A DNA stretch of 64,000 nt from Eukaryota sp. TZLM1-RC (lineage: Eukaryota > Protista > Metamonada: BaSk clade). Below the pieces are notes generated by a model that worked only from the letters and a program-made list of their open reading frames with translations, ran no database searches and was not told the DNA's origin. Positions 2,473 to 55,229 of this stretch are shown here, one piece after another. Position numbers and translations under genes: made by a program. Location of the stretch: NCBI GenBank assembly GCA_040285825.1, contig JAUPSS010000005.1:496001-560000 (forward strand), written 5' to 3'. How positions within the stretch are numbered: position 1 is the first letter of the stretch; each line of letters opens with the position of its first letter.

Positions 2473-2510
2473 TAATTTGCAATGTGAATAAATTAATTAT
2501 TAATAACATC

Positions 2511-3496
2511 TTTTTTTTAAAAAACTGGAATATTTATTGAGATAAAAATAACCATCTAGAATTCAATATCCTCCAGACAAGCGTCACCATTACTGAACCT
2601 ACTCACAGCATTACGTTCATATTCTACACCGACAGCTAAAAGTGCCTTTGAAATCATTGTAGGAATAGACTTGAAAATGCAAAAAACAATTCTATTTAAC
2701 CAGAAAATGGAGTTCATTGTTTTACCAGACCTATTCAGCAACACTTTCTTAAAATTTTCCAAAAAGTGCAACCCTGAAGGTCCAATATTGCCAAAAAGAG
2801 AAATTGCAAACGGCACAAACTGATATTTCACATGTTCCACTCTACCTAACTGTGCCAAAGGTTCATCATATTTTTTTATCTTCTTTTTTTCGGCGTTAGA
2901 TAACGGCGAATCAGCGGAATACACTAAACGAGCAGCAGAATTTTTGCAAACATCAACTGAGACAACATCTACAACATTGAGAACACCATCGATCCCTGGA
3001 GCTACTAAATCTGCCCTTCTTTTACCAAAGGAATCATCAGTTTGATCTGAAGACAGCTTACGACTAGTGGCTCAATAAATGCCTCTATATTGAAACTTTT
3101 GCACATGGCATATAATTGATCACGAACTGAGTCATGAACAATTGAGCGATAAGTTATAAAATAATTACAGTTTAAAATATGGGAAAGCGTAACAACACTC
3201 CTGCGGCGACAAATTAAATCATTTGGTAATGTGCAAGGCCATAGAAAACATCTCATTCTCATTGCAGTGGTCCATTGGTGAACATTAAGTAGAAGGCCAT
3301 AAATGTTGGGAATTTGGGATATTAGGCAACTTGAGCAACTGTCTTCAAGATCAATCAAAAAGTTTGCAAAAACGGGATTTTTTCCTTAGCCAAGCTAAGA
3401 CGTACAATATAATCCAAGTTTTCTAAAACTTTCAAGATTTTTTTCTGCAATTTTGCAAAAGTCAGTGGTAAGGAGAGCAAGCTTCTTGAAGGAAGT
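2511..3496 (-). mobile_element. 5'-truncated CRE-like (RLE) non-LTR retrotransposon, family A
   Basis: Frameshifted C-terminus with Zn knuckle (IC..SVVTLSHILNC) and RLE motif RADL...VVDV. AATAAA plus A8 tail at 2511-2518. Near-identical to 42731-43743. Possible TSD TAATAACATC (2501-2510) / TAATAACTTC (3500-3509). Confidence 0.9.
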
Positions 3497-3576
3497 GAAT
3501 AATAACTTCCACGTCAAACAATAAATGGATTTTGCAATTTTGCTGATTGCCAGTAATATCTTTGTGCTATTAGCCT

Positions 3577-4695
3577 ATGTCTTCCACCTCAATTCTACGT
3601 TCATGGAAAAGCATAAGCTTCCCATCTCTTCTTTCAGAACTGTCAAACACTGTTGCTGAATTGAATTCAAATAAGGAATCATCTTCTCTTTCACGAATAA
3701 AAGATCTTGCTGACGCTACAAAGACCTTTCAACAACTCGATGAATCCTCCAAACTCACTCAAATACAGCCTCTTCTAAAACGTTACCAAGACCTTGTCAG
3801 CAACCTCTTCAAACGTTCAAAATCCAGTGAAAAGGCCATCAAATCATTAGCAAACCGTCTTTCACTTGCCCAGGATCCTGTTCCTTTGCTAGAAGCTCTT
3901 CTTACCAAGCAGGAATATCAACAGGACCAACATGATCATGCAGAAGAACTATCAAGAATGTTAGTGAAGAAGGAAGATGAACTAGTAGAACTGAGTAAGA
4001 AATATGATGAGTTAGTCTTGACTTTACTACCAAGGTCACTAAAACCTGTGGAAAGTCCAAGACCGTCACGTGATAATCAATCACATGATGGTGATGTTTA
4101 CAAGCAGTTATTAACCCTTCAGCGGGAACATGTAGATTTATTAATGAAAATGGAGAATTTTGATAATCAATTGAGGGGAAAAACTGAATTTATTGAAGAA
4201 TTAAATCAAATTAATACAAGTTTATCAAGGGAAAATGAGTCTTTGAAAAATGAAAATGCAGCTCTCAGTAACCAAATTCAATCAATCAAAACATCAACAA
4301 TCAATCAAAAACCATTATCTACAGAAGAAACTCATCGACCGGTTAATAACCCTCAATCATTTTCTAATCAATCAGATGCTTTGATTTCAATCAAAAAACA
4401 TAGAGATCGTTTATATTCAAGGAACAGAAACTTGGAATCTTTGTTAGATCAAGCTAATTCTAAAGTATCTTACTTGGAAAAAGAATTGAGTATGAGAAGG
4501 TCAAATATGCGGTCAGAATATGACGTGGAACATGGTAGTTTAATGATCCCTACTAGTCAGTTCAAGAATTCAAATATTGACATGTTGTTGCTCTCATTTT
4601 CTAAATTTATTAATGAAAATTCGAAAAAAAGAAGATTCTTCTATTTGTATGTTTCAATTCTACATATATTTTTATTTTTGAATTTAATTTTTTGA
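3577..4695 (+). CDS. CASP: CASP/COY1-like golgin (CUX1 N-terminal domain, coiled coil, C-terminal TM)
   Basis: N-terminal ...PLLKRYQ...KRSKSSE...DPVPLL matches the CUX1/CASP N-terminus. C-terminal TM RRFFYLYVSILHIFLFL has the CASP-type Y/H residues. Confidence 0.8.
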   Translation: MSSTSILRSWKSISFPSLLSELSNTVAELNSNKESSSLSRIKDLADATKTFQQLDESSKLTQIQPLLKRYQDLVSNLFKRSKSSEKAIKSLANRLSLAQDPVPLLEALLTKQEYQQDQHDHAEELSRMLVKKEDELVELSKKYDELVLTLLPRSLKPVESPRPSRDNQSHDGDVYKQLLTLQREHVDLLMKMENFDNQLRGKTEFIEELNQINTSLSRENESLKNENAALSNQIQSIKTSTINQKPLSTEETHRPVNNPQSFSNQSDALISIKKHRDRLYSRNRNLESLLDQANSKVSYLEKELSMRRSNMRSEYDVEHGSLMIPTSQFKNSNIDMLLLSFSKFINENSKKRRFFYLYVSILHIFLFLNLIF

Positions 4696-5889
4696 TAATA
4701 ACACATTTTTGTTATCAATGATTTTAGCGATTGAATTAATTAATTCATAATTTACATAATAAGGAATTTCATTTGAAATTGAAATTAGATAATAATTTGA
4801 ATTATTTTCATTTCGTTTTTGAATAAATCTTTGTTCTGAATCTTCATTCAACACTATATAAAATTCATTTTTGATTGATAATAATTTCGAATTAACCCTG
4901 ATTAATTCAATTAAATTAATATTTCCAAATAAATTCACATTATTTTCTGTAAAGGACAAAATAGAATTAACAGGAACAAATTCAGAAGTATCTGTTTTCA
5001 GTGATTTATAGTGAGTTAAAAAATTGTGGAATTTTGCAAGGTCAAAATTAGTCGATATCACGTCAGCAAACTCGTGACACAAAGGCTCAGAATTAGAAGG
5101 AAAAACATTGACTAGGTAGAAATCTTGCAATTTTGACACAAACACTGAATAATTAAAATTTTTGGTATATAAACTGCACTGAAAACTAGAAAATATGCCT
5201 CCTTGTTTAATTACCAAAAAACTCTTAATCACTAGCAACAAACTGCTAAACCCCTCCAAATTCCAAAAGCTCTTACTTCCAAACCAAACTATTGGCCAAG
5301 AAAGTTCTGAAGATAAACATGAAAAACAAGAAAAAACAAATGAAAATAAACAATTATTAGAACCTGTAAAGGAATTCAATTGTTGATTAATTTGTAAATA
5401 CTCTTGCCGGACTTCAGAGCTCATGAAACTGCTGCTTGGGATGCAGAGCCTGGTTGACAATAAAGTGGGTAATAGATCGATTTGAGTGGAAAAGATAAAC
5501 TCCAAGAAGGGTAGAGACTGGGCGAAGCATGTTTTCAAACGTTCCATTTGTGGTGGTGTCAGTGATGGGGTAGCAAGTAGTTTTGGACTTATCATCAGGG
5601 TATAGAGCTTGATGAGAGAGGAGAAAATGGATTGGCAAATAGAGAGCGGAGTGGAGATGTGTTGGGAAAAGATGAGACGAACTCCTTGATTTGAAGAAGA
5701 AAAAAGATGGAAGAATGTGAGAGAATCAGGGGTTTCAATGTAGTTGAGGTTTAGAGCAGAGTCTTCCAGGCTCGCAATGGTGGCATGAAGGAGACCTAAT
5801 CCAGGGAAAACCAAAGGATTGATGTTAGAGCCAAACGAAAACAGTGGTAGCCCATCTGACGTCAGAGCAATAACTCGAGTATGTGTCAT
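4684..5889 (-). CDS. Fuzzy-like longin-domain protein (CPLANE/ciliogenesis)
   Basis: N-terminus IALTSDGLPLFS...LVFPGLGLLHA resembles the first longin domain of Fuzzy. 401 aa. Confidence 0.6.
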   Translation of the reverse strand: MTHTRVIALTSDGLPLFSFGSNINPLVFPGLGLLHATIASLEDSALNLNYIETPDSLTFFHLFSSSNQGVRLIFSQHISTPLSICQSIFSSLIKLYTLMISPKLLATPSLTPPQMERLKTCFAQSLPFLEFIFSTQIDLLPTLLSTRLCIPSSSFMSSEVRQEYLQINQQLNSFTGSNNCLFSFVFSCFSCLSSELSWPIVWFGSKSFWNLEGFSSLLLVIKSFLVIKQGGIFSSFQCSLYTKNFNYSVFVSKLQDFYLVNVFPSNSEPLCHEFADVISTNFDLAKFHNFLTHYKSLKTDTSEFVPVNSILSFTENNVNLFGNINLIELIRVNSKLLSIKNEFYIVLNEDSEQRFIQKRNENNSNYYLISISNEIPYYVNYELINSIAKIIDNKNVLLSKN

Positions 5890-9887: not shown

Positions 9888-11873
9888 ATGACAGCTATAC
9901 ATCTGTGCATAAGTCCCTTTTCAATCATCATGAGCAACTACGCTCTTCAATTTTGGCCTGTTCCTTCTGTATTCCTGCTTGTCCTATCCACTTTATCCTC
10001 TTCGTACGATCCCAAAACACTGACATCGTTCTGTTTACCCAGAATGGTAAATTCCATTACTTTTGTTTTATCATCATTTTCACTCCTTTACTCCTTCCTT
10101 TTCCTTCCACTCACGATTATTATACCGTTTATACACTTCCTCTCAGCTTCTACTCTAGTTGACATTAAAACAGATCGTTTTTACTTCTCTACATCTTTAA
10201 TTTCGGTCATTTCTTCTCTTCTTCTTTCCTTTCCTTCCATACCAAATAGTGAATTAGTAATTGGTCTATGTTTAATAACAATTTGTTTCTGTTCAGTACA
10301 CTATTCAGCCAGTAATCAAAGCAATAATATGCGCCTTTCACATTCAATTTTCCCTTCGTTTATTCCATTTAATTTCGATATCAATTCAATTTCACCTCTT
10401 TTTATTTTTCTAGTTTCCTTTGCTTTTTTGATATTTGTAGATTGGAATAATTTTATTGAAGGTCCAAGTGATGGTAAATTTTTCATTTTTTCATTGAATT
10501 TAGTGATCCCTGTATTGATAGCATTGAGCTCCTTTCAAAAAATTGGTGACACGTCATCAAACGTCACTACGAGCTCTTCAATGAAATGCAGCATTGTGGT
10601 TTGTGGATTGTTTTTGATTCTCTATCATTTTTCTTTAACATCAATTATTTCTTCTGTTCTATTTGGATTGATTTTTTATTATTTACCTAATTTTTCAGAA
10701 TTCTCTACCCAAAGTAGCATACTGTCTCCACCAGGTTCTCATATTAATCAAGAAAGGTCAAAACTATCACGTGATACGCTCAGAATTATTTTGACTGCCA
10801 TTTTTATTATGATGTCGATTGTTTCCTCTTCGTATAACTACTCCCCTTTAGCGTGGAATCGGGTCTATCTGGATAATCAATCAAATTGCCCATCAAATAA
10901 GATTGAAGGTCGATTATATCCAATAGATGTACTTGGGCGATTTCAGAACATCTTGAGAATTCCTGAGAAGAAGCTCAGAATAAGTACTATTGATGACGTC
11001 AGAAAACACTGTAGACTCGACTGTAAAGTCGATGATTCGATTTATGATGATCAGTTTGCCTACAATCTAATCTACGATAGTATTGATAAGTCACTGAGTT
11101 CGTTTGTTATTCCATTTGATCCAAATTTTATTGAAAATATTATGATTTTGGTTTATTCAATTCAGTTCAGCAAATCTGAATTTCCTATTACTGTAGCTTA
11201 TTCAAAGATCAATCAAATACCCGACCGTTATGTGGCAGTTTTTAACTGTTTGGGTGTGCATTTGATTGAAGTTGATTTAATTGATTGTCCATCAGCTTTT
11301 GCGGATTGCGATTTCCTCTCTTTAATCAAGTTTAGCCTTTTTAAAGCCACTTATTTCGAAAAAATTGTTGTTCTTGATCCCAGGGTTATTTTAATCAAAA
11401 ATATTGATTATCTGTTTCTGACCCCCAATGATGTCATCACAGCTCAATCAGACCCCCAACGTCACGAAATTTCGACATCAATCATGGTAATGTCACCAAA
11501 TGAAGAACTTTTTGGTGATTTAATTCAAGGTTTAAGCTTATTTAATGAGCAAATTTTTGATCAATTTTCTATTTCGATGAAAACATCAGATATTAACTTT
11601 TTGGATAAATTTCTAAACCATTATTCTTATCTTTCAGTCATGAGACTTCCCTTGACTTTTGATGGAAGTCCTAAATTGAATAAACAATTTTGTGGAAAAG
11701 CCAAAAGATATGTCAAAACAAACCATATTAGTTTGGTTTTTTATAATGATATTTATCCATGGAAAATTCCATTAAACAAGAGACTAAAGGGTAGCTATTT
11801 GGACTTTTGGTTCCATTTAAATTTGAAGATGGTGGAAGATTACCGCTATTTGAAGTGTGCACTGGCTCTGTAG
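9888..11873 (+). CDS. Multi-TM protein with a C-terminal glycosyltransferase family 8-like domain
   Basis: Hydrophobic N-terminal half. KFSLFKATYFEKIVVLDPRVILIKNIDYLF and YPW match the GT8 pattern, but DxD reads DPR. Start codon uncertain. Confidence 0.7.
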   Translation: MTAIHLCISPFSIIMSNYALQFWPVPSVFLLVLSTLSSSYDPKTLTSFCLPRMVNSITFVLSSFSLLYSFLFLPLTIIIPFIHFLSASTLVDIKTDRFYFSTSLISVISSLLLSFPSIPNSELVIGLCLITICFCSVHYSASNQSNNMRLSHSIFPSFIPFNFDINSISPLFIFLVSFAFLIFVDWNNFIEGPSDGKFFIFSLNLVIPVLIALSSFQKIGDTSSNVTTSSSMKCSIVVCGLFLILYHFSLTSIISSVLFGLIFYYLPNFSEFSTQSSILSPPGSHINQERSKLSRDTLRIILTAIFIMMSIVSSSYNYSPLAWNRVYLDNQSNCPSNKIEGRLYPIDVLGRFQNILRIPEKKLRISTIDDVRKHCRLDCKVDDSIYDDQFAYNLIYDSIDKSLSSFVIPFDPNFIENIMILVYSIQFSKSEFPITVAYSKINQIPDRYVAVFNCLGVHLIEVDLIDCPSAFADCDFLSLIKFSLFKATYFEKIVVLDPRVILIKNIDYLFLTPNDVITAQSDPQRHEISTSIMVMSPNEELFGDLIQGLSLFNEQIFDQFSISMKTSDINFLDKFLNHYSYLSVMRLPLTFDGSPKLNKQFCGKAKRYVKTNHISLVFYNDIYPWKIPLNKRLKGSYLDFWFHLNLKMVEDYRYLKCALAL

Positions 11874-23913: not shown

Positions 23914-26120
23914 CACTGTTGGCAGTAATTAGTCTCACTCAGACTAAGTTTGTACTGAATTGTTTGTGCTTTCCGGACAATATTAGTCTCACTCAGACTA
24001 TATTTTGCAGTGAGACTAATTCTGTACTGAGACTAATTTTGCAGTGAGACTAATTTTGTCTCGACCTTATTTCCTTTGACCACCAGACAAACAACATCTT
24101 TATCAATAAAAAACACTCAATCTATTCTAAAATATAACATTCATCCTCTTCTTCATCCTTCAGCTTAGTAATCTTCTGTTGTGTTATGAAATCTTCGGTT
24201 ACTTGAATTTCCTCCTCTGAATTATCGTCGAATCCCTGTACTTCAGTGAAATCATCGTCGTCACTCACATCTTCCCAGATATCTTCATAACAACTGGGAG
24301 GCTTTTCTCCTTTGAAGTTTGCATTGTATTTGGAAATAATTGCTTGAAGTTGGGGACTCAGATATTTAACACTCCATTCACCAACATCGTCCAAACCCAA
24401 TCCACAGCGTATCATCGCTACTCTGGCGTAAGACATGTTATTCTCATTCCTCTTGGAGTTGATTTCAGCCACCACTTCCTTGGCTAAGTTCAAAAAGTAC
24501 CTTTTTCCTGGATTGGGAAGTTTTCCAGATGCACAATACTCATTGTTTTGTATCATCTCTACCTTTTTCCGATCCCATGCCTTTGTCCACGCCCTTTTGA
24601 TCATTGCAATGATGAATGTATCACAGGGTTGCACTAAATGAGTTGAGTTTGGGGGCAAAAAGCAAACAGTAGCATGTAAACGTGTCAGAGCATTCTTCAC
24701 TCTGGCTGTGAGCTTGTGACTTGGAACGTTGTCGCAGAAAAATATTTGCTTTTTGTTTACCATTCTGCAGTTAACTCTTCTTTCTTCTAAATACTCGGCA
24801 AATTTTTGAGAAGTCATAAAGCCTTTTTTTGCCGTTCGATAAGCCACTTGAGTATCACTGTCTTGTAGATTGCGGATGGGATAGCTTTCTGACTGATTTT
24901 GAAATATAAGAAATGGTACATCAATACGAGCATTTGGACCGCCAGTGAGCTTCACCACTAATGTCATTCCCTGGGAACCACTGACGACATCAGTGTATCT
25001 TACTTCCTCATCACCAATAAATCCCAATGTCTTCTTATTATCCATATTGATACGGAAATGAGTCTCATCGAAATTGCAAATTTGACTGTGATCAATCCCT
25101 CGATCTTGAAACATTCTTGCGACATTGCCTAAGTGAAAAGCCACCGCTCTTTCAATTTCTTCCTGTTTAACAGCGCCAACGGAGAGTTTACCTGTTTGAG
25201 TACGAGGAACAATATTAAATCGGGCCATAAATTGTTGAATCCATTTGAACTGAATTCGGTCCATAAGCATCTTACCTGATTTATCTTGAGGATCGATCCA
25301 TTCTGGTCTAAAAATTGGATGATTTCCAGTTCTTAAAACGTGTTTAGCGACATCTCCCAGAATACTGGTGTCGATCTTACATCCCATCTTCTTCATCACG
25401 AGAAACTCCTCCAGCAGTTCTTTGTGTACCCATTCTACCCATTCAGCTCTCTTTCTACCTCTTCCGCTCCTGGCTTTTAAAAGAATTTTCTTCACTGTAC
25501 TGTTTTGTACACGTTCTAGGGACAATTTGTCCTTTTCCAACCTCCTATAAAACTGATGGCGGTTTTTCCACCAGTCTGATGCCTTTTGGATGTTGGCGTT
25601 TGAGGACGATCTGAAGTGCTCGGGAAACTGTTTGACAGTGGCAGCTTTCAACCCCTTTTCGGTGTTTTGTTCTTGTACCCATCTTTCCATCCACTCAAGA
25701 ACCACTTTACGAGTTTGTTTGGTGGAAACTTGTTGAATTCGTCTTTTAGTTCCTGCAGTGGGAGACAACACAGCGTTTTCATCATGGTGTTGTATTTCAG
25801 GAAGTGGTAAGACGATAGGAGTGGAGGTATCCACTTCTGCAGAAGGAGGTGTAGTGTGAGCCGTGCTAGAGCGTTGAGCCCGTGCAAAAGATTGTACGAG
25901 AGGAGAACCCGAGAAAAGACCGTTCATTAGTAAGAGAAAAAATGAATAAAAAATGATTGGTACAAAATTTTATAAGTTTTTGAAAAAAGTACTGGAAAAA
26001 TGTTTATGAAACTCAGGACAAAATTAGTCTCACAAAGACGATTTTGAATGGTCATTGGACAAAATTAGTCTCACTCAGACTAATTTTGCAGTGAGACTAA
26101 TTTGGCAGTGAGACTAATTA
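23914..26120 (-). mobile_element. pogo/Tigger-like DNA transposon inserted in the Gypsy remnant
   Basis: Begins after TA at 23912-13. IR core TAATTAGTCTCACT at 23926-23939 and 26107-26120. About 9 ATTAGTCTCA subterminal motifs in both orientations. Confidence 0.9.
24122..25927 (-). CDS. Intact pogo-family DDD transposase (CENP-B-type HTH + DDE_1), 601 aa
   Basis: NFDETHF, FCDNVPSH and LPPNSTHLVQPCD catalytic motifs; WIQQFMARFNI HTH end. Confidence 0.95.
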   Translation of the reverse strand: MNGLFSGSPLVQSFARAQRSSTAHTTPPSAEVDTSTPIVLPLPEIQHHDENAVLSPTAGTKRRIQQVSTKQTRKVVLEWMERWVQEQNTEKGLKAATVKQFPEHFRSSSNANIQKASDWWKNRHQFYRRLEKDKLSLERVQNSTVKKILLKARSGRGRKRAEWVEWVHKELLEEFLVMKKMGCKIDTSILGDVAKHVLRTGNHPIFRPEWIDPQDKSGKMLMDRIQFKWIQQFMARFNIVPRTQTGKLSVGAVKQEEIERAVAFHLGNVARMFQDRGIDHSQICNFDETHFRINMDNKKTLGFIGDEEVRYTDVVSGSQGMTLVVKLTGGPNARIDVPFLIFQNQSESYPIRNLQDSDTQVAYRTAKKGFMTSQKFAEYLEERRVNCRMVNKKQIFFCDNVPSHKLTARVKNALTRLHATVCFLPPNSTHLVQPCDTFIIAMIKRAWTKAWDRKKVEMIQNNEYCASGKLPNPGKRYFLNLAKEVVAEINSKRNENNMSYARVAMIRCGLGLDDVGEWSVKYLSPQLQAIISKYNANFKGEKPPSCYEDIWEDVSDDDDFTEVQGFDDNSEEEIQVTEDFITQQKITKLKDEEEDECYILE

Positions 26121-32414: not shown

Positions 32415-33066
32415 TCACCTGACAGGTTCCTTATTGGCGTTGATCTGATACAATCAAGATTATGTGGTTACTTCTTAGATGATAATTAAATTGAAGTTAC
32501 CCCTTGTCCAACTGGCAGAAGATACATGACAAATCCTTCACCCAGTAAACACTCTTCCAACCAAAATTATGTTCACAATTTCAACCAGTATTTGAACCAA
32601 TGGAATTTGTCAGGAGGAAAGTGTATTTGGAAATTAATCGCCAGAAATGGAACATAATTATTTGTGATAACCACAAACGAAAAGAGAGACGGTTTCGAGA
32701 AAGTTTCAACAAATTTCAAAGGCTGGCTGAACATCCTGTAAATTTCTACTTTGCTGTGGGTTCTACTAATTTTCCTTCCCATTGCTGAAAAATCAATCAA
32801 TATGAATCAACAGGAACTTTAAAAAATGATTGTGTTGTCAAAAGGACGTGAAGCACTTGTCAATCAGTGAATTGAATACAAGGAAACTATCCAGTTGTTG
32901 TATGGCCAACAATATTGAAGCAGGCTCATGGCAAATGCGTATTTGTACTGAGTGTCAAATAAAATATGACAGAGATATTTAAGCTGCAAAAAATGTTCAA
33001 ATTAAGAAGAAAGCGGAATTGTGGCCGGAAAGATACATTTGCCCAGAAGCTCTTTTGAGACCATGA
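32415..33066 (+). pseudogene. Fanzor RuvC half, subfamily 2 copy A (5'-truncated)
   Basis: FLIGVDL (D 32442); RQKW...FYFAVGSTNF; ISELNTRKLSSCC (E 32869); RICTECQIKYDRDI*AAKNV (D 32974); ends CPEALLRP*. Confidence 0.85.
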
Positions 33067-33395
33067 ATAAGGAAGCTGAGCAAACAAAAACTGAAACTTT
33101 TGAAAAACTTATATTTTATTTTGAGTGTTCACTTCATTTTTAATTTTTTAAAAATTTTTGAGACCGATCTACAAATGCCTTATCAGCATATGATAGATCG
33201 TCTTAGATACCTCAAGTCGCGACGCTTTGTTCTGTGAAATCAGTAGATGTATTTAAGTGAAGTAGCCCATTGATGAGGATGATGACTGTGTCAAATGACA
33301 CTACACGTTTCTTGCAGCCTGTGAGTAGACAGTGAGAAAGATGAATACATGAGTGAATTTCACAGGAGAATGGATGCTGAGTCAAATTCACAGTA
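33067..33395 (+). ncRNA. Conserved structured 3' end of Fanzor subfamily 2 (candidate omegaRNA scaffold/right end)
   Basis: Aligns throughout with the reverse complement of 53479-53537 plus 49852-50126. Stems at 33166-33199 and 33203-33213/33246-33256. Confidence 0.6.
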
Positions 33396-33656
33396 GTAAC
33401 AAGCTTTATACGAACTCATCGAAACTGCAATTGTCCTTGGTAAAATAAACTAATACTGCTGTTTTCAAAAACAACTTTATCAAATTTGAATCTTTGGGAA
33501 ATCAAATAGTTAAAGCAGTTCCAGAATTACGTACTAAAGTGTTTATTTAACTTTTTGTCAACATTCCTCATTTTTGTAGTTGTAAGAAGTTGTATATAGA
33601 CAAAATTATATGGTGAACTGACTGATCTTTCCTCGACTCTCACGCCCACTGTACTG

Positions 33657-35513
33657 ATGACTATAACAGTGGCTGCATTTGTTAAGATTTTCTTCTCTTC
33701 TGTAGTCCAGTCAGAAGTGGAGAGTCAGCTTACGAATAAGCAACGTATTGCAGTACTTGCTACTAGGCTGGCTCGACTTTTTGTTTTACAGTGCCCGGAC
33801 CTGAGCAGTTGGCTCACACAACAGCAGTTCTGGAACTGTGTTGTGATTTTGGGATGTTCTCGGTGCCTCAAAACCGACATCCCTTCCTAATGGAGGCTGT
33901 TGTTTACAACACTCTCTTTATTCTGTCGTCACGCCCGAGCTGGCCATTTCCACCACTGTGTTCATCAAGCCACCGTACTGGAGCCCGACGGGTTCGCCCG
34001 GGGTACTATTTCTCTTTTGTTTCTGCGACAGGCCGTCGCTTTGCGGAAGCACACCGCCGTCTTTTGACAGATTAACGGTAGTGCTGGAAACAAAACTGAT
34101 TTACAACGTGGTTCCGTTGCTTGGCGTGTCCAGGCCCCAAAACCTATGCATCCTGTGTCTTGCGCCGGAAAACAGTCTCACCTAAAGTTGCCGCCTTTGC
34201 CAGCCAGTGACATGAGTTTTCAGCGTCAGATGGGAAACTCTGCTGGACATGAGTGGTGATGTCCTCGACAATAATCACCAGCGCTTCTTTGAGCGTATTC
34301 TTTTAGAACCTGTTATGCAACTCTCCAATGAGGTTGCTGCTTTTGTACTCTGTTGTGGGTTAACTAGCATGTCATTTCCGAGGGGGTCTCGCCCGACAGT
34401 ATGAAAACACAGTCCTTGTTTCCTTTTCGCGGGTTATGTCCCAGGCTTTGTGAACTTAGACAAACAAACACTTGACGCATTTGCTTCTAAAAACCATGGC
34501 GGTCAGCTCCTGGTGTGCCTTTACCGCTATTTCGGCTTATCTCGGGACGAATACCCAGAATACTCTGTCGCCATTTTTTCTTTTTCACAAACCGTCAAGC
34601 TTACTCGTAAAAAGCGCACCAAAAAAGTGATGAAGGAAGGTCGAGCTGCAGGCTTAGTGGAGGACTTTCACGCCTCTGAAATACAGGACAATACAGCAGA
34701 AAGTCACCACGCCCAGAAAACCAGACATGGCTCCAAGTCAGCAACAAAGGCCTCCCCGGAATGCCAACGCTTTCTTTGTGGCCATGGACCCCAATCACAG
34801 TAATCTAGTGGGTTGGACAGCTGGTCAGGCTGGTGGACCACTCAGATCAGGCATTGTCTTATCACCAAGGCCGTGCTGCAAGAGCTCCATGACAACTCCT
34901 CCTCCGTTGAGCCAACTGAGTCCAAATTGTTATTCCGTTCAGGGCTATTATCAGTATCTGAATGCAATGACAGCAGAGTTGGTCGACCTACTGAAATGGA
35001 ACAGTGGCTTAATCTGAATTTTCAAAGAGGAAAAATGAAAAGATGAAGTTTAATGGACCACCATCTACATCCAGGAAAAAGCTATACACCGTAACCGCTT
35101 CGACTATATTATCCGTCGCCAAAAGAGATTCAGCCATTTTGTCCAGAAAATGAAGAACATGGCTGAAAATCGTGAAGTGATCATTTGGTTTGGGAAAGGA
35201 GGTGATGGACCATCCCGTCAAAGAGTGAAAAGGCCAAGAAAGCGTTTTCTGAAGTAAATCAAGGCTGATTTCCAACCATGAAGGATGGCGATGAATACTA
35301 TACATCAGCCAAAGTGAACTGTTGCATGTTTTCCATGAAGACCTTTACTTTATAGAGAATGGAGAAAGGAAAAAGTCTAAAGCCTATTTTGCATGTACAG
35401 AATGTGGGATGGTTTGGTCAAGAGATATCTCTTCATCGAGAAACCAGTGGGAGATTGTAGTAAGTGAGTATTTTTTGAACACAAGACCCCTAGCTTTTAG
35501 AAGACCTCAATAA
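33657..35513 (+). pseudogene. Nearly full-length Fanzor1, subfamily 3 (frameshifted)
   Basis: RIAVLATRLARLFVL; SLFPF..YVPGFVNLDKQTL; RuvC-I VAMDPN (34787); RNRFDYIIRRQK...VIIWFGKG...P; RuvC-II DEYYTSAKVNCC (35293); CTECGMVWSRD (35424) ...RPLAFRR*. Confidence 0.9.
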
Positions 35514-35652
35514 GAATCTTCAAATCCAACGTATTTTGATCTAAGCCAATCATCTCCGGAGGGTCAAGTTTAGACATGTGGATGTGGTTGAAGTATCGGA
35601 AATTGACATTTCAGATAAAGAATCTATTTCCAGTGAAAACCACAGGCAGTAG
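35514..35652 (+). ncRNA. Candidate omegaRNA/right end of Fanzor subfamily 3
   Basis: Nested pairings CTTCAA/TTGAAG, ATCCA/TGGAT, TTGATCT/GGGTCAA (35518-35593); GAAAT-TGAC-ATTTC hairpin; terminal CC.GTG-AAAAC-CAC.GG (35630-35646). Confidence 0.5.
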
Positions 35653-35675
35653 TAACAAAGTTTTGATGTCAATTC

Positions 35676-36890
35676 ATGTTGAATGTTCTCTCAGATCTTC
35701 CATACTCTGAAGAACTCAAAGAAGATGTATCTAATGTTGTCACAGCCCTCACAATTCTTGGCTCTTCTCTTGAACAGCTCTCTTCTGAATGCAAGCAGCG
35801 GCAATTCTCCAGACCTCTTCAAGCCATCCTTGCAGATCTTCAAACCACAAATACTCATCTCGCAAATTCTCTACCCTCCATAGTCAGAATCGCCAACAAG
35901 GGACTCCAATGCCACGAATTCGAAAAGCTTCTCAACAATGCTAATCTGAGAATCAATTCAACAGAAGCCGAATTAGCCGTTCTTAGTGGTTCAATTAAAA
36001 CCTCAATTGAACAGAAACGTCATTCTGACCGGAAGGCGTCACGTGTAGGTCAAAAACTCCAACTGATGAGGTGGCGCCACGTCATAATGACAGCGATACA
36101 GAAACAAGAACTTTTATTATCGAGACGACATTCTTCTGATTTAATTAGACAATTACTAGAATTAAAAGCCAGATTAGACTTTAGAAAAAGATTTGGTGTA
36201 GGCATCGACCCTGACGAGAATTTTGACACGTCATCATCACGTGAAGGATTAAGAAGGTCAAAAATGGGGTCAAAAATGGGGAGAAAGTCCAGGACTGACA
36301 CGTCATGTATTGATCTGAATCATGTTGATTCTAAGTTTTTCAAAGACCTTGGTCAAATTTATTACGATCAATCAAATCAATTTGATTGTCCGGGACCAAT
36401 GACATTAGATGTAGCAATTCAGACAGAAACTCAAACCCAGTCAAGAAGAGAGACCAGAAAACCAAAGTCTGCAAAAGACACTCGTTTACTAAATTCACAT
36501 TCGGATTCCATGAAAAATTCCAAAACTAGACAAACTTTACAATTAAGAATTGTAGATTTGGCTAATAACAAAACCTCAAAGTCTCATAAAGGACTCGAGG
36601 CCTGGGAAAGATTGCTTTGGAGTGTCAATCGGCATGTTTTCCTTACAAAGTTGATAAACTTAAGGAAGCAGCAGAATGTGGCTCTGAGGCTGTACAAAAC
36701 GTCTAACCAAAAAAAGAGAATTTTTGAGAAGAAAAGGAAAGAAATTCAAAGAGAAGAGTTTACCAACACGGCGAGAAGTTTAAATTCAATGTTTAAGCTT
36801 GATGACGGTTATTTTTCACCTGTTAAGCATGGTGATGTGTTGGCTCAGGTCACTAGTAGAGCTAGCCTCGGTCATTCCAAGTTGTTGTAG
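35676..36890 (+). CDS. Hypothetical coiled-coil protein, 404 aa
   Basis: Long ATG-initiated ORF with host-like composition; no family recognised. Confidence 0.7.
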   Translation: MLNVLSDLPYSEELKEDVSNVVTALTILGSSLEQLSSECKQRQFSRPLQAILADLQTTNTHLANSLPSIVRIANKGLQCHEFEKLLNNANLRINSTEAELAVLSGSIKTSIEQKRHSDRKASRVGQKLQLMRWRHVIMTAIQKQELLLSRRHSSDLIRQLLELKARLDFRKRFGVGIDPDENFDTSSSREGLRRSKMGSKMGRKSRTDTSCIDLNHVDSKFFKDLGQIYYDQSNQFDCPGPMTLDVAIQTETQTQSRRETRKPKSAKDTRLLNSHSDSMKNSKTRQTLQLRIVDLANNKTSKSHKGLEAWERLLWSVNRHVFLTKLINLRKQQNVALRLYKTSNQKKRIFEKKRKEIQREEFTNTARSLNSMFKLDDGYFSPVKHGDVLAQVTSRASLGHSKLL

Positions 36891-44157: not shown

Positions 44158-47100
44158 TCAAGTTTGAATTAATAGATCATCAGAATCACTATTTGAGTTT
44201 TCAGATAATGTCAAATTGCCCATTTTCTCCTCATCCTCCCCACATTCAGAGTCAGAATTAATGTCAACATCGTCATCAGACACGTCATCGCTGACGTCAT
44301 CAGCTTCCGAATCAACTGCAACATCCAAATATCCAGAAATTGCACTAGAAACAACTGAACAATCAACCTCAGCAACATTCTTTGCGGAAGGTTTAATTAA
44401 AACTCGTAGCTTACTAAGTGGTTTAAATAATTCAAACCTTACATTAGTGGTGGATTCACTTTCAACTACTTTTTCATTATCAAAACCATAATTGTGCTTA
44501 ATCCATTGTTTAGACTTTTGACTTTTCCTTACCTCCAAGACAGGAGGTTGACCTGATAATTTTCTAAATTTATAAAGATCTTTTTTGAATAATTCAGAAT
44601 ACGATAAACGAAGATCCACTGCATATTCGGGAATAAAAATATCGAAATACCGCTCAAAAACATTGATGACGTAAGCATCGACTTCCTTTTGACCCCCATG
44701 ATGTTTCCTTAAATAGTAACCCAGCCAAAGCAAGAATGCATCATCAGAAGCTTTTCTTGATTCATATTTCTTTTCATTACAAAGAATGGCAATTTTGTTC
44801 ATTTCTATTTCTGTTGGAAGACCATGTTGTTCCATAATCAAAAGCACGTCATCATCGGTCAAAACCATACCAGAATCTTGACATTTCTTGACTTCCAACG
44901 CAGCACTCAGTTGTCTGTGCACCATAACATCTGGGTACCTCCTAATAGGAGAAGTGAAATGAGTATAATAATCCATGTTGAGCGCATAGTGAGAAAATGA
45001 AACATCTTCCGATCGATCGGCAATATTTGGGGCAACAACATATTTGGCAAGAGTAAATCCTTTGGTACATAAAATCATAAAAATATCATGAAAATCTTGT
45101 CTTGAAATATTGAACTGATCCTTTCCAACATGGTCAAACCAAGTCAAGACAGATTTGATTGTTCTTCCAAATTCAAGGGAGTTTTCAAAATTTCCTTCCA
45201 GATCAAACTGTTCCATCCAAGATTTCAATGTCTCAATCCCTTCTTCCTTAGGTGGGTCGTGGTACCGAACAAGGGAATATGGTAAAATAGAAGAGATAAA
45301 TTGAGATACTGATGCATTTGCTAGTAGCATAAACTCTTCAATTAACCAATTCGCTTCATAAGTTGTAGATGGTAGAATTGACACTTGCCTGAATCCGTCC
45401 CCATGAAGAATCGAACTCGTTAGGGGTGAGCTTTCGTCTACAATTTCGGAGGGCTCTTCCGATTCCTCCACACGATTTAGGTGAATTTTCATTTTCTTTC
45501 TATTAAATCCTATGCTTCCAGCATCAAATCTTTTGGCTCTCCTCTTCTCAGCCAACTCCCACAACAAAAGCACATCATGCTCAACATCTTCCATAGTGAT
45601 ATCAGTAAAAAACTGTGGTCCATTTGGCAGACAATCTTCTTCTGGAGGTGGTGATACAACCTTGCCATTATTGAAGAGGATAAGCTGTGCGTCTCCATAA
45701 GCTAGCCTAGCTCCAGGAGTAATCATGGACTTTGTGAATTCGCAATCAATCGTGTCACCAGTGTTTCTATTAATAGTAACAAAGCAAGAAAACGAACACT
45801 TTTGGTCTCGTTCCAGTGAACAAGCCAACTCAGAGAGTATTTCAGGTAACATTTTAACAACTCTGTCTGGAAAGTACACAGATGTGGTCCTGGATGAGGC
45901 AAACTTGTCTAGCTCCGTATTAGGTAAAAGATAGTTGGTCACGTCAGCGATATGGATGCCGACCTTGACTGTGGTTTCATCTAAAATTTCAACACTCAAA
46001 GCGTCATCCAAATCACGAGCTGAGACGGGATCAATAGAGATCACTCTCAAATTTTGACGATAATCAACTCTGAGTCCTGATTCAATCTGTTTTTGCCACT
46101 CATTTGCCACGTCATCAACAGCTTTTTCTGTTGACTGTACAAGACTTTCCTGAAACTCCGAGAAATCAAGCGAATGTTTATGCAAAAGCATTAAGGAGCC
46201 TGAATTCACATCCTTTGAATCACCGAAATGCTCGACAATTTCCCCCACAGGCCTATCCGTCCAAAACCATTTAGTCACCTTTACCAAATAAAGGTGATCT
46301 TCAAAGAGGTCAAAATCATTATCATTTGTGACCCTTATCACGTGCTCAAGAGGACCGTATGGTTTAAAAACCCATTCTTTCTGAAGGTCTTCTGATTTCT
46401 TGATTGATTGATTGTTTGGTTTCTTTTTTTGACCCTTTCTGTTTCTTTTTTGAACTACTTCCTGGTAAGCATCACAAACAATCAATCGATTAGATTCCGC
46501 AAGAATCCCAACGACTCGACCAGACGGTTGCTTTTCTTTTTGACCATCGACCGTCTTGTCAGACCAAAATTTTGAATGAAAAAGCTCGACAACCACAACA
46601 TCACCGTTGAGTGAACAATTTCGATCTCTATGACCCGAGAACATAACGTCAATGTCAAAAGTGGGGTACAAAAGGTGATTTTCTTCAATAGTCAAGGGTA
46701 AATCTGATCCATTCTCGCCCATTTCTCTTTGAATTTCTTCCTTATGTCGTTCGAGTATTTCGCACACCTCACTCTTAGCTACACCGACACCATAAGATCT
46801 CATTCCTTCTCTTGGTACTTTGACTTTACAGACGGTGTACTTTACCTTACCTGAATCATTGGTGAGGAGATGATACAGTTGAGAGAGTGGGTAGTGAAAG
46901 CGCGAAGAGGGGTTAGGGTTGGGGTCTTGTGTATTTGGAGTTTTGGACTTTTTGAAAATTCTTTTAGAGCCTTTTTGAACGAGTTCTTGCTCAGTATGAG
47001 GTACGCAATGTCCATGAGGTTGGTGAGGAGAAGAGGGTTGGTGTGGGGACGAAAAGGTGGCATCTGGAGATACAATTGAGAAGGGAGGATGTTGTGAGGT

Positions 47101-47316
47101 ACGTTGAGGTGTTCGCTTCTTGACAGAGGGGGCAGTTCCAAAAAAGGGGTTGGAGGGGGTAGACGCTGGATGCTCAGAGGACTTGTTATTGTTCTTGTTC
47201 TTTTTCCTGTTCCTGAAAGGCTTGGGAGCTATTGGTGTAGAGTCTGGGACAGTTATGGTGACATCTATGTCAAGCGGAGCAAAGGAAGTCTTCTTGTTAC
47301 CTTTCTTCTTACCCAT
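44158..47316 (-). CDS. DIS3L2: DIS3-like exonuclease 2 (RNB domain, no PIN domain)
   Basis: DRNCSLNGDVVVV, ISIDPVSARDLDDALS, LIEEFMLLAN and YTHFTSPIRRYPD. First ATG at 47316. Confidence 0.9.
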   Translation of the reverse strand: MGKKKGNKKTSFAPLDIDVTITVPDSTPIAPKPFRNRKKNKNNNKSSEHPASTPSNPFFGTAPSVKKRTPQRTSQHPPFSIVSPDATFSSPHQPSSPHQPHGHCVPHTEQELVQKGSKRIFKKSKTPNTQDPNPNPSSRFHYPLSQLYHLLTNDSGKVKYTVCKVKVPREGMRSYGVGVAKSEVCEILERHKEEIQREMGENGSDLPLTIEENHLLYPTFDIDVMFSGHRDRNCSLNGDVVVVELFHSKFWSDKTVDGQKEKQPSGRVVGILAESNRLIVCDAYQEVVQKRNRKGQKKKPNNQSIKKSEDLQKEWVFKPYGPLEHVIRVTNDNDFDLFEDHLYLVKVTKWFWTDRPVGEIVEHFGDSKDVNSGSLMLLHKHSLDFSEFQESLVQSTEKAVDDVANEWQKQIESGLRVDYRQNLRVISIDPVSARDLDDALSVEILDETTVKVGIHIADVTNYLLPNTELDKFASSRTTSVYFPDRVVKMLPEILSELACSLERDQKCSFSCFVTINRNTGDTIDCEFTKSMITPGARLAYGDAQLILFNNGKVVSPPPEEDCLPNGPQFFTDITMEDVEHDVLLLWELAEKRRAKRFDAGSIGFNRKKMKIHLNRVEESEEPSEIVDESSPLTSSILHGDGFRQVSILPSTTYEANWLIEEFMLLANASVSQFISSILPYSLVRYHDPPKEEGIETLKSWMEQFDLEGNFENSLEFGRTIKSVLTWFDHVGKDQFNISRQDFHDIFMILCTKGFTLAKYVVAPNIADRSEDVSFSHYALNMDYYTHFTSPIRRYPDVMVHRQLSAALEVKKCQDSGMVLTDDDVLLIMEQHGLPTEIEMNKIAILCNEKKYESRKASDDAFLLWLGYYLRKHHGGQKEVDAYVINVFERYFDIFIPEYAVDLRLSYSELFKKDLYKFRKLSGQPPVLEVRKSQKSKQWIKHNYGFDNEKVVESESTTNVRFELFKPLSKLRVLIKPSAKNVAEVDCSVVSSAISGYLDVAVDSEADDVSDDVSDDDVDINSDSECGEDEEKMGNLTLSENSNSDSDDLLIQT

Positions 47317-47953
47317 TGAAAGTTGTAGGAAAAATAATGGCAAAAATTTGGAAATTTTCAATTTTTGATGATTGTAATGATTGTTCTTTTAATTTCACAT
47401 TTTCCCAGTGGTTGTTCCACAGTTAGTGGCATCAATTGAATTAATTGTTGTATTGAACTGAAGCCTGAATTCTATTCAACACATTGACAGGGTAGATGAG
47501 TTAATGGCACTTAAAGCAGTTTATTCAGTGCTTAGGGCGACGTAACTTCATCATTCTTTCAGACAATAATGCCTCCTTAATCCTTCAATCTGTTCAGCAA
47601 ACTCTGGAGTGTTGCGAATGATGGATGTAATTCCGTGACTTGTTCTTGCGCGTTGTTTAAAGAGATACATGTACAAATCCCTGTGTTGTTTGAAGATGCC
47701 ATGCAGTGGACGGGAGTTACTCTGCTGCAACTACAATGAATAGTACAAATGGGTACTCTCCTATAATTATAAAAGACGTTTATATAAGGTTCTGGCATTT
47801 CAACTAGCCAAAGCTGATGAAAGTTCAGCTATTTTCTTCAATTAACTTGTTATAAAAAACAGATTGAAACAAAAAACCAATGTAAAGTTAAAAAAACAAA
47901 AGAAAACTAATTTTACAACAAAACTAAATATACACAATTAAATTACCAATCAA

Positions 47954-50126: not shown

Positions 50127-53100
50127 GAATATGATAATTTATTGAATTTGCACACTTGATTAAATTAAATCATAACTAATGGGACGACTATCATTAAACC
50201 AAGATTTCCTCTACAAAATCTTGATTTGCTTGCTGTCTAGCTAAAGCTTCTCTAATTCGATTGAAAAACCGCGGTAATCTATTAATAATGGCAAATTGAA
50301 TCCGTGAACGCCATAAAAAAATATCAAATCTTTTCATTGTTTTTTCTTTCACCATTTTTTGGAAGTCATCCAAAAAAGTTTCTGCTTCAACTGATAATCT
50401 TCCATTTATCGAAAATGGAAAAGCAATAAAAACCAGCTGTGTATTTCTATCGATATTTGCATCTTCAATTTCTTTATCATATTTTCTATGTTTTTCTTTT
50501 GCTTTAAAATCCAGAGCAGCCACAGGATTAAGTTTTCTTCTGTGAACCAAAGTATCGTTTGCAACATTACATGAGACAAAGTCAACAATAGCTTCAGAAT
50601 TATCAATCCAATCACAGTATACATCACCTCTATCATCAGAACCAAAATTATTCAGAGAAAGTGTTTCTTTCAGCAGGGGCTCTTTGATACACGATATCCT
50701 TGCAGTTTGTGCCATATTGAAAACAGTGTCTCTAACAGCATCATGTAATGAAGAACGATAAGTTATCAATTTAGAGCAATTTAGAGCATGGCGCAAAGTG
50801 AGTTGAGGTGAATTCGAACAAATACATTTTTCTTTTGATAATAATTGGTTAATGGGGATGTTCAAATATAATCTCATTTTTGTTACAAATGCTTCATTAG
50901 TAGCACACAATCCAAATCTTCGTGGTACAATGGTTACAAAAAGTGAAGAATCTGACACCTTGTTTTCACAAACACCCTTTTCCAATAACAATGAGTGAAG
51001 ATCTTGATTTAAAACAGCCGAGCTGCAAATATTATTATAAAGATCTTTTTCATACATTCCAGTCAATCTTTTCTGTAATGTTCGAAGAGTGTACTTCAAA
51101 TTTAAAACATTTTTTTCTGGAATATTGCCATTGAATGATTGGGGAAAACATCGACCCCATTTTTCTACATCAATTCTTGAAATTTCTTCATTTAATGCAA
51201 AAACAGTGGAACTTTGCGTTGTCATCAATAAATCTTCCCAATCTGCAAATCTTTCGGAGAACTCAAAGATTGCATTTCTGCATCCACCAACAAAAGCACA
51301 CGAGGTAAGAATAGAAGCCTTCGTCCACCCTAAACCACCATATTGTGGACTAAGGTAAGCATGATCTGGAATTTGAAACATTTTACATCCCAGTAATTGA
51401 GACAGAACTTTTGCACGTAACTCATTAAACTTTTGAGCCAAAGGTCTAGTGACGAGAGGACTTGTAGATCGAAATATATGATTAAAATTGGAACTAAAAC
51501 ACAGTCTTATAATGGTAAATTTGATGTGTTTTTTTATATCTAAATTCATCATTCGGTCAATTTTGTCAGAAATTGAGTTCAACTTTTCAAACAATTTTTG
51601 GTAATTTCATCATTATTTCCTAAAAACGAACCCAAATGACGAATAGCATCAATTGAATATAATTTGGCTTGAATTTCAATATCATCAATTATTGTGGAAA
51701 CTGGAGAATTCGAAAACAAAACACATTTAAGTAAATTAAGTCGGAGACCAATTTTGGTAAATAATTCTTTAAAACATACAGTTGCTTTTTTTCACAATAT
51801 TTAATTCACCAATAAGCACAACATCATCCATATATGCAATCATTTTTAGTGAAGGAAACATCTCTTGAATTTGCAGTAGAATAGGATGAATGGCCAAACA
51901 AAACAAAAAGAGGTCCTAACGGATCTCCTTGCTTTACGCCACTTGATGAAATCAAAATGTTGTTACCAAAATGTAAATTAGAATATGTGCAATATGTTGA
52001 TTGAAAATATGGTATTAATTCTGGCATATATTGCAATAGAGCACCATGGATACTGCGACGACTTAGCGAATTGAAAGCATTACTAAAATCCAATGACATG
52101 CAAACATTGGATTCATTTTGACGAAATAAGACATCAGTAGCAAAAATCGCTGAAGAGACTCCATCTGTAGTATTTATACCATATTGAAAGGGTAATAAAA
52201 TCTTTTTAGCTTTTTCATTGAACCTGCTTAAGCAACACGCAGAAAAAATATTATGTAAGTTCTCAGAGACTGCAATAGGACGAACATCCATTTTTGAATT
52301 TTTGACAAGTGCAGTCAAACGAGAACTTCTTAATTCTTCTGGGTACTTGCGTAGACCAGATAATATTTGGTTGAAAAATTTGGTCAATAAACCAAGGCAA
52401 TCTTCTGAAGAAATAATCGCGGCTTTTACATGATCAATAGTAATACCAGAAAGTCCGGCAGACTTACCACGAGGTCTCTTTTTGATAACCGAAAAAACTT
52501 CTGATGGCATCAATGGATAATTTTCCCAGTATGTGCCGTAAAAATTTTGATCCATAACAGGGTCTTCATAAGGATGAAGTATTTTCAGTTTATCTACTGT
52601 ATTTTCATTGTTCGGTGCTTTGACTCCGGGACTTAAAGCTGACAAAGCCTTGGACCATTTGTTGTCAAAGCATTTGTCTTCAAAAATTTTACTTAATTTC
52701 TCGGATGACTGATTTCTCGGTGCTATATTGGTTAAATCTTCGGAAATATTAACGAAATTTTGTTCAAAAGGAGGACAAAAGAACCAAAAAATTCCCAAAT
52801 AATATTGATAGCATACTTTCCTTTACATAATTGATCCAAAAATCTTTGAAAAACGAAAGCAAATTCATTGCATTTGGTCGGATGAATTTCTTGAGGTATT
52901 CTTATAGGAGGATGGTAGTTATCAACTATGCGGCATTTCAAGCAGCGATCAGAAGTTTTTCCTTTGCATTTTTTCTAAAAGAAATACCACAAGTGTTGCA
53001 AGTTTTGTGCTTCAATCGATTGCTAACTGGTTTTGCAACAACTTGTGGAGCATTATTTATGGGTTCTACCTTAGACTCTTTCCTTCTAATAAATTTTCTT

Positions 53101-54455: not shown

Positions 54456-55229
54456 ATGTTTGGACAGCTTGTTACAGGTCCTCCAGGATGTGGTAAGAGT
54501 ACTTATGCTCATGCAGTTCAGCAGTTCTTGTCGGAATTTGATCGTAAAGTTACAGTTGTTAACCTTGATCCTGCCAATGAAAACATTCTGTATGACTGTA
54601 CCATAGACATCCGTGACTTAATTGATATTGATCAAATAATGGATGATCAAGATCTTGGTCCTAATGGTGCCCTATTGTTTGCATTTGACACTCTTGAGAA
54701 TAACTTTGACTGGTTAAAAGACAAGCTTTTAGCACATAGGGATACCTATTTTTTATTTGATCTGCCAGGACAGATAGAACTTTTCACTGTCTATCCAGCC
54801 CTACAACGCATTGTAGGAATACTCGAGAAATGGGGTTTCAGACTAGTTTGTGTTAACCTAGTTGATTCTTTTTGTTGTACTGATATCAGTAAGTTTATCT
54901 CTGCAGTTTTGATTTCATTGACAGAAATGTTAAATTTAGAACTTCCGCACGTGAATGTACTTTCCAAAATGGATCTCGCAGAGGCGTATGGCAAGTTACC
55001 AGCACCTCTGGAGACTTATACTGGGTTTATTGATACTGAGATGCTCATATCATTACTACAAGAACGGGAAACTCGCTCAAAGTTCCAGAAACTTAACCAA
55101 ATGCTTGCAGAGTTGCTTGATGAGTTTTCCTTGGTGACGTTTCTTCCATTAGATGTTTCTGATAAACAAATGATGTATGAAGTACAAAAGAAGTGTGATG
55201 TTGCTATTTGTTATCCTTATCCTATCTGA
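54456..55229 (+). CDS. GPN2: GPN-loop GTPase 2
   Basis: FGQLVTGPPGCGKSTY, NLDPAN, LGPNG, FDLPGQIEL and LPHVNVLSKMD. Confidence 0.92.
   Translation: MFGQLVTGPPGCGKSTYAHAVQQFLSEFDRKVTVVNLDPANENILYDCTIDIRDLIDIDQIMDDQDLGPNGALLFAFDTLENNFDWLKDKLLAHRDTYFLFDLPGQIELFTVYPALQRIVGILEKWGFRLVCVNLVDSFCCTDISKFISAVLISLTEMLNLELPHVNVLSKMDLAEAYGKLPAPLETYTGFIDTEMLISLLQERETRSKFQKLNQMLAELLDEFSLVTFLPLDVSDKQMMYEVQKKCDVAICYPYPI

Follow-up and report, generated by a model that had tools for sequence, protein, structure and literature searches.

The stretch of DNA analysed here (64 kb, referred to as the window) belongs to strain TZLM1-RC, which is listed in database records as Eukaryota sp. TZLM1-RC and which we take to be Skoliomonas litria. 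At 33657-35513, on the plus strand, it carries the remains of a gene that was probably once part of a mobile element and that resembles the genes of Fanzor1 nucleases. Fanzors are TnpB-derived RNA-guided DNA nucleases of eukaryotic transposons. The following features could be assigned to the relic:

33657-35513, plus strand: Fanzor1-like pseudogene, full length from the ATG to the native stop codon (frameshift-aware alignments, profile matches, tblastn)
34413-34427, plus strand: SLFPF motif
34438-34461, plus strand: VPGFVNLD motif
34772-34825, plus strand: RuvC-I motif FFVAMDPNHSNLVGWTAG (FFVAMDPN...), aligned to the invariant AIDPN block of the family alignment A1 (see below)
34787-34789, plus strand: codon of the RuvC-I catalytic Asp (VAMDPN)
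35096-35131, plus strand: RFDYIIRRQKRF motif
35177-35203, plus strand: VIIWFGKGG strand (motif stretch 35177-35221), with Gly at the canonical TnpB RuvC-II Glu site
35287-35325, plus strand: GDEYYTSAKVNCC (GDEYYTS...), the relocated RuvC-II Glu followed by a non-canonical first zinc knuckle
35293-35295, plus strand: codon of the alternative (relocated) RuvC-II Glu
35394-35456, plus strand: second zinc knuckle CTEC and RuvC-III motif WSRDISSSRNQWEI (WSRD), from the alignment and a weak PF07282 match
35424-35426, plus strand: codon of the RuvC-III Asp (WSRD)
35484-35513, plus strand: RPLAFRRPQ followed by the stop codon

Within 33600-35520 no long open reading frame (ORF) is present, and the region forms a GC-richer island. 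The relic has a GC content of 46.1%, compared to 36.4% for the window and 33-41% for the neighbouring host ORFs, and individual 60-nt lines reach 55-57%, as had been noticed in the original prediction. That prediction had joined small ORFs of several frames into a protein of about 600 amino acids on the basis of eight motifs. All eight could be located on the plus strand in the expected order, spread over three frames, and a series of this kind is far beyond chance. The three acidic residues of the RuvC domain, which had been reported as retained, are readable in VAMDPN, GDEYYTS and WSRD.

The homology of the whole region was verified with a hidden Markov model (HMM) built from alignment A1, which comprises 11 intact relatives from other genomes and excludes the window sequence. 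The HMM was searched against all six-frame pieces of the 64 kb and matched seven collinear pieces, covering HMM positions 1-62 (E 1e-15), 137-167 (8e-4), 237-343 (2e-15), 329-429 (5e-24), 451-510 (4e-22), 519-537 (4e-4) and 535-590 (9e-18); elsewhere in the window no score was better than E 0.03. A frameshift-aware alignment, one of the checks that had been proposed, placed residues 1-597 of the intact relative P0010 (604 aa) on 33657-35528 with 235 of 573 residues identical (about 41%). Similar alignments were obtained for three further intact relatives (P0004, P0009 and P0020), and tblastn of full-length relatives onto the window gave collinear matches from 33648 to 35510. A stop-free piece of 119 amino acids (34658-35014) was additionally compared by phmmer with 1.84 billion cluster representatives. 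It yielded 17 matches, four of them at E <1e-10, including full-length proteins of 548-604 aa; one match, a 1195-aa repeat protein, looks spurious.

The relic is thus complete in length, in agreement with its earlier description as nearly complete, but 8-10 frameshifts are needed to read it and 7-9 in-frame stop codons are crossed, the count varying with the reference protein. The idea of a cryptic nuclease that could still be made did not hold. Because of the number of frameshifts and stops, the window copy is to be regarded, on the evidence of its sequence, as a dead pseudogene which makes no nuclease today.

For the structural classification of the family, an AlphaFold2 model of the intact relative P0010 was built on A1 (mean predicted local distance difference test score, pLDDT, 62). 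In a Foldseek search with this model the top seven matches were all Fanzor1 proteins (SpuFz, PpFz and GtFz; E 1.9e-10 to 3.6e-5), ahead of Cas12f. VIA-align gave Z-scores of 15.4-16.4 to Fanzor1, with 424-467 residues aligned across positions 1 to 591, followed by RuvC-only folds at Z 11.8 and ISDra2 TnpB at Z 10.2 over 247 residues. The RuvC fold itself was evident from matches at Z 10-12 with RuvC, Tex and Cas12 RuvC domains, and no Fanzor2 structure occurred among the 50 best matches of either search. The model comparison against Fanzor1 structures including SpuFz, which had been suggested as a test, therefore returned Fanzor1 as the best match of the modelled relative. At the sequence level, the Cas12f1-like TNB zinc ribbon (PF07282) could be detected in P0009 with 28.1 bits at a cut-off of 26.3; P0004, P0010 and P0006 scored below the cut-off and the window piece reached only E 0.011. 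Searches of the separate relic pieces against Pfam and NCBIfam yielded nothing beyond one sub-threshold PF07282 hit and chance matches, and the C2H2 zinc fingers and the amine oxidase found by phmmer of two relic pieces against PDB sequences were rejected as noise. A language model proposed as look-alikes (score 0.98) clusters of PF07282/DUF8286 'transposases' from giant viruses and eukaryotes.

The arrangement of the active site points in the same direction. The blocks AIDPN, GDE[YF]xTS and SRDISAS are conserved in the full-length members of A1, and the Asp-Glu-Asp triad of a TnpB-type split RuvC domain follows in order, readable in the window at 34787, 35293 and 35424. At the canonical RuvC-II strand the family has WFG[SNK]GG, and the Glu of the GDE block lies about 34 residues downstream, before the zinc ribbon. 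In Fanzors the canonical Glu is described as replaced by Gly or Pro with a rearranged RuvC-II (Jiang et al., 2023, PMC10530073), and a Glu located some tens of residues further on, immediately in front of the zinc finger, compensates for the loss (Jiang et al., 2023, PMC10530073; Yoon et al., 2023, PMC10711439). The family displays this pattern, although some TnpBs share it. As modelled, the architecture of the family is Fanzor1-like with an enlarged REC lobe. The fold of the intact relative and the TNB zinc ribbon support the original assignment of the relic to a Fanzor1-type RuvC nuclease, and the explanation as a whole, a decayed gene of a Fanzor1-like, TnpB-derived element, is given a probability of about 0.9.

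The right end of the element could be mapped by comparison with the closest copy of the relic, the paralog L001 on another contig, and with contigs of a public DNA sequencing run. This run was the one among the public runs with related short contigs, and no RNA run containing the locus was found. The following features were assigned:

35514-35645, plus strand: 3' non-coding tail and right end, ending GTGAAAACCACAG or perhaps 4 nt further (GCAG), from paralog similarity and a public-run contig
about 35584-35643, plus strand: terminal hairpin within the 3' tail

The similarity between the window and L001 ends at 35645 (90.6% identity up to this position), and the public-run contig agrees with the window over 35453-35645 but not beyond. 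No continuation of the similarity between the window and L001 into the host gene could be found (score 20, reached by 13 of 500 shuffles). In strain TZLM3-RCL multiple copies with common sharp ends are present. In full-length elements of family A (P0009 type) the ORF is preceded by about 1.4 kb of non-coding leader and followed by a tail of 106 nt that ends in GAAAAACACAGA. Those of family B (P0010 type) have a likewise extended leader and a 74-79-nt tail ending GAAATCCACAGTA. In truncated copies the leader is shorter. The right-end signature of the family is of the type GAAAnCACAG. In the family-A copy examined (L011) no second sizeable ORF is found, the leader of about 1.4 kb included; inside the mapped elements there is no gene call except the Fanzor gene and no transposase gene, and no terminal inverted repeats were seen at the ends compared by eye. 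The window element is very probably a 5'-truncated copy, of about 2.2 kb with a putative left edge, of a Skoliomonas-specific mobile element.

Hairpins in the tails close on the right-end bases and their sequences differ by subfamily. Compared to shuffled sequences, the folding z-scores of the tails are -7.0 (L008), -3.4 (L006) and -3.6 (L001), and -0.8 for the decayed window copy. In the solved Fanzor and TnpB systems the 3'-terminal part of the ORF together with the right end of the element encodes the omega-RNA scaffold. By analogy, the 3' tail is a candidate omega-RNA scaffold region of the ancestor. In an ancestor that was still active, the last part of the ORF and the hairpin-rich tail would have given rise to an omega-RNA, with the guide read from the flanking host sequence. 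The sole protein of the element would have been the Fanzor1-like RNA-guided nuclease of about 600 amino acids, its cleavage activity being predicted, and since the element has no transposase gene it would have relied on functions supplied in trans.

All relatives with a source looked up originate from three Skoliomonas assemblies. The Skoliomonas genome paper describes S. litria and the sister strains GEM-RC and TZLM3-RCL and does not use the name TZLM1-RC. Homologue searches of the protein collections with P0010 and with the family alignment returned Skoliomonas proteins only, without an outgroup. Intact copies, which had been suspected elsewhere in the genome, do exist in the sister strains: TZLM3-RCL harbours dozens and GEM-RC1 one full-length member (596 aa). 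In the TZLM1-RC genome itself, annotated fragments and one better-preserved copy, L002 with a single frameshift, were found. At >=90% identity, three subfamilies comprising 10, 14 and 41 sequences could be distinguished in TZLM3-RCL; many of these sequences are uninterrupted full-length ORFs of 592-605 aa on separate contigs. Because so many near-identical full-length ORFs lie on different contigs, the sequences point to a recent amplification of the family in this strain. In the within-family tree the window copy forms a deep branch of its own, whose position relative to the L002, GEM and RCL-B/C lineages is not resolved. Two further copies are located as follows:

L001, 5933-6724 and 10714-11269: paralog of the relic in two parts, divided by a 4-kb insertion
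L002, contig JAUPSS010000004.1, 4905-6867: sister-subfamily copy with two long ORFs and a single frameshift near 5795

The frameshift of L002 is masked in the NCBI model P0004 (548 aa) by an intron, through which part of the WED region is lost. An inverted partial duplicate is found at 459-1319. L001 is 78% identical to the window over 34334-35092 and 90.6% over 35092-35645. The 3' part of L001 lacks the stops and gaps of the window copy and has lesions of its own, namely a Lys at the relocated catalytic Glu and the loss of the second CxxC. As the 3' parts of the two copies have no frameshift or stop in common, their sequences indicate that they decayed independently after insertion. As a side observation, the flanks (1-3733 and 9935-10966) of an intact family-B copy in L004 contain genes for DUF8286 together with Cas12f1-like TNB as well as a Peptidase_C48-like protein of 991 aa and a DNA_pol_B_exo1 protein; these are probably parts of other kinds of Fanzor element.

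The position of the copies relative to host genes is consistent. The relic is followed by:

35676-36890, plus strand: downstream host ORF of 404 aa without a Pfam family; a database record from the same 1.86-Mb contig contains exactly this protein

The right end of the relic at 35645 lies 30 nt upstream of the ATG of this ORF at 35676, on the same strand, and the right end of L001 lies 29 nt before a ferlin-like gene. In all 12 copies examined (the window, L001 and the ten intact copies L003-L012 of TZLM3-RCL) the next gene is located on the same strand, and in 10 of these the distance from the right end to the ATG is 0-48 nt, the other two having 295 and 548 nt. The right end of L006 directly abuts the ATG of RtcB, while gaps of 4, 10 and 43 nt separate L003, L012 and L008 from a PDCD2_C gene, a kinase gene and CRM1, respectively. 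Gene prediction after repeat masking could bias the annotated starts to the first ATG past the element.

Given these distances, the relic may have persisted in the window because the 404-aa gene recruited the relic's 3' part as its promoter and 5' leader, a reading that is compatible with the Fanzor1-like relic and is possible, if on balance doubtful. It would agree with the higher conservation of the 3' 550 nt, which are 90.6% identical between the two old copies compared to 78% further upstream. This difference could, however, reflect a chimeric L001, split as it is by the 4-kb insertion, and a bias from repeat masking could weaken the argument from the start codons. Today, the relic would serve at most as the upstream region of the adjacent gene.

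The assignment to Fanzor1 follows from the fold; sequence comparison is not its support, and several observations weigh against it. The P0010 model is of only moderate confidence (pLDDT 62) and its whole-chain TM-scores are low (0.31-0.38). Sequence methods link the family to Fanzor and TnpB only via the short zinc-ribbon domain: the A1 profile did not match PDB sequences even at E 10, and the Pfam OrfB_IS605 model matched neither the relic pieces nor the intact relatives. RuvC-I is invariantly DPN and not the DPG Fanzor signature, and it fits neither DPG nor the D-nonP-G variant of the published Fanzor expression (Yoon et al., 2023, PMC10711439), although DPG is a search heuristic and not a catalytic requirement. 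The first zinc knuckle is C[CH]xxxH instead of CxxC, the second being CxxC, and the Glu is separated from the first Cys by eight residues in the family and by six in the published pattern (Yoon et al., 2023). Pfam RuvC models likewise gave no match to the family. The description of a divergent family is thereby confirmed, as RuvC models and the profile search of PDB sequences both miss it and it is recognised by its fold and by the TNB zinc ribbon only.

These deviations, together with an identity of just 10-15% to the solved Fanzor1 proteins and the missing sequence-profile link, would also fit an independent transfer of TnpB to eukaryotes outside the Fanzor1 clade, in which the Fanzor1-like architecture arose by parallel elaboration; eukaryotic leaves on other TnpB branches have been described (Saito et al., 2023). 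This origin is considered rather unlikely. The seven best structural matches of the model are all Fanzor1 and cover the REC lobe as well as RuvC, whereas the alignments to TnpB and Cas12f comprise only about half that number of residues, at Z around 10. The combination of a relocated Glu and a Gly in the canonical position is typical of Fanzors, even if some TnpBs have it as well.

The family and the Fanzor1 systems (SpuFz1, GtFz1, PpFz; PDB 8GKH, 9CEU-9CF1, 9CER) have in common a size of about 600 aa, a bilobed structure whose REC lobe is large and helical, a split RuvC, the Gly at the canonical RuvC-II position, the relocated Glu just before the zinc ribbon and a RuvC-III of the type ..RD..A..N. 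Both are eukaryotic multi-copy mobile elements with a structured 3' tail that ends at the right end of the element. The family differs from Fanzor1 in its low identity (10-15%), in DPN for DPG, in the C[CH]xxxH knuckle and in the lack of a Pfam DUF8286 match; furthermore, its elements lack terminal inverted repeats and carry no transposase as a companion, its copies precede host start codons at short distance and in a single orientation, and the window copy is dead. Fanzor2 is compact and close to IS607 TnpB, whereas the modelled family has the enlarged REC lobe of Fanzor1. With the TnpBs of IS200/IS605 and IS607 (ISDra2 TnpB, PDB 8H1J) it shares the RuvC fold and the TNB zinc ribbon (PF07282); in both, the element ends are asymmetric, lack inverted repeats and include a hairpin on the right. 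These TnpBs are, however, only about 400 aa long with a small REC lobe (247 residues aligned, Z 10.2), while the family lacks a TnpA partner and all its copies are found on eukaryotic (megabase) contigs beside eukaryotic genes. It represents a plain Fanzor with a single domain set and without an exonuclease, protease or 2A module.

On its left side the element abuts a second relic, and short direct repeats were found around the window copy and two further truncated copies:

32902-33391, plus strand: right end of relic X, a different, older Fanzor relic that abuts the one described here, ending AAATTCACAG
32944-32994, plus strand: CxxC..RD tail of relic X (weak tblastn match of the RuvC-III piece)
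33392-33407, no strand: left direct repeat of 16-17 nt (TAGTAACAAGCTTT type), directly after the right end of X and 15/17 identical to 35647-35663
33408-33656, plus strand: putative 5'-truncated non-coding leader with 32% GC and a presumed left boundary
35647-35663, no strand: right direct repeat, immediately after the right end of the element
4387-4399 and 6890-6902 of L004: direct repeat of 13 nt flanking a 5'-truncated copy, the left copy of the repeat following the right end of an older relic
3262-3275 and 5884-5894 of L006: direct repeat of 11 nt flanking a 5'-truncated copy and containing the RtcB start codon

A second copy of the end of relic X, with 84% identity, is found on the minus strand (53697-53461 and 50126-49852). 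A 3.3-kb insertion, in which a reverse-transcriptase ORF lies at 51824-52798, divides it into two parts, and about 80 nt past the end of this copy a CFA20-domain gene begins (ATG at 49777). The contig depth in the public run is about 10-fold higher at 33300-33383 than over the Fanzor1-like relic, with a loose end at 33395, from which it follows that the end of X is highly repeated. The A1 profile matches relic X only at E 0.03-0.4. The repeat at 32902-33395 was considered as a leader of the Fanzor1-like element and rejected, as its second copy sits before another host gene.

The direct repeat in the window is probably a target duplication, which would place the left edge of the element near 33408; a point against this part of the reading is that the left boundary has no other basis than the 16-nt repeat. 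In the three 5'-truncated copies (window, L004 and L006) the repeats start exactly at the right end, while no such flanking repeats were found in the five full-length copies examined. For this reason, the 11-nt repeat of L006 could be rejected as the target duplication of a full-length element, L006 itself being 5'-truncated. The constant right end, the variable 5' truncation and duplications of 11-16 nt in truncated copies only could reflect a Skoliomonas-specific Fanzor1-like clade that inserts one-way, 0-48 nt before start codons, by copying anchored at the 3' end. In this full form the proposal is speculative and unlikely. If true, it would be consistent with omega-RNA-guided nicking and target-primed or break-repair copying, and not with the peel-and-paste mechanism of the IS200/605 type.

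The decay of the window copy was traced in detail, and the surrounding genes served as a control of the assembly:

near 33834-33858, 33973-33986, 34214-34247, 34348-34378, 34419-34433, 34663-34735, 34976-35085, 35273-35276 and 35323-35326, plus strand: frameshifts of the relic
34073, 34079, 34097, 34208, 35015, 35036/35051 and 35255, plus strand: in-frame stops of the relic
34249-34803: NCBI model P0001 (P9112_009271, 148 aa, one intron), spliced from two out-of-register relic fragments
24122-25927, minus strand: intact 601-aa ORF
44158-47361, minus strand: intact gene of a DIS3-like RNB exoribonuclease
54456-55229, plus strand: intact gene of a GPN-loop ATP_bind_1 protein

The breaks near 35266 and 35325 are single-base gaps in comparison to the paralog L001 and to the public-run contigs and could in principle be assembly errors, but this does not apply to the stops, which were made by substitutions. 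The neighbouring genes of the window have clean ORFs of 400-1067 aa and those listed are intact, which suggests a good assembly around the relic. The model P9112_009271 is almost certainly spurious. A gene that is still alive, with introns, programmed frameshifts, a variant genetic code or assembly errors behind its frame changes, is extremely improbable: in its favour are the spliced NCBI model over part of the relic and the two single-base gaps, an error type of long-read assemblies, but introns do not explain the breaks, since the alignment to intact relatives crosses them without intron-like extra sequence, a changed genetic code mends no frameshifts, the 8-10 frameshifts are accompanied by 7-9 substitution-made stops next to neighbours with clean ORFs, and the paralog has other lesions including the loss of the catalytic Glu and of CxxC.

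The horizontal acquisition that had been proposed as a possibility was not confirmed. The relic is GC-richer than the host genes, but the intact relatives of TZLM3-RCL have 40-42% GC like their neighbours, and each of the three Skoliomonas genomes has members of the family. Outside of these no member was found in the protein collections searched, and nothing in the sequence data demonstrates a recent foreign origin. No report of a Fanzor from Skoliomonas or Metamonada was found in the searchable literature, and the Skoliomonas genome paper mentions neither Fanzor nor TnpB.

The relic itself is ordinary genomic debris, and its value is that of a pointer to a divergent Fanzor family not described before, which would probably escape motif and HMM screens built on DPG, CxxC or OrfB_IS605. 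Its intact members of 592-605 aa in TZLM3-RCL are candidates for direct testing as RNA-guided nucleases, for which no reconstruction is needed. The consistent position and orientation of the copies before start codons bears on the target choice of Fanzors and on their tolerance or use by the host.

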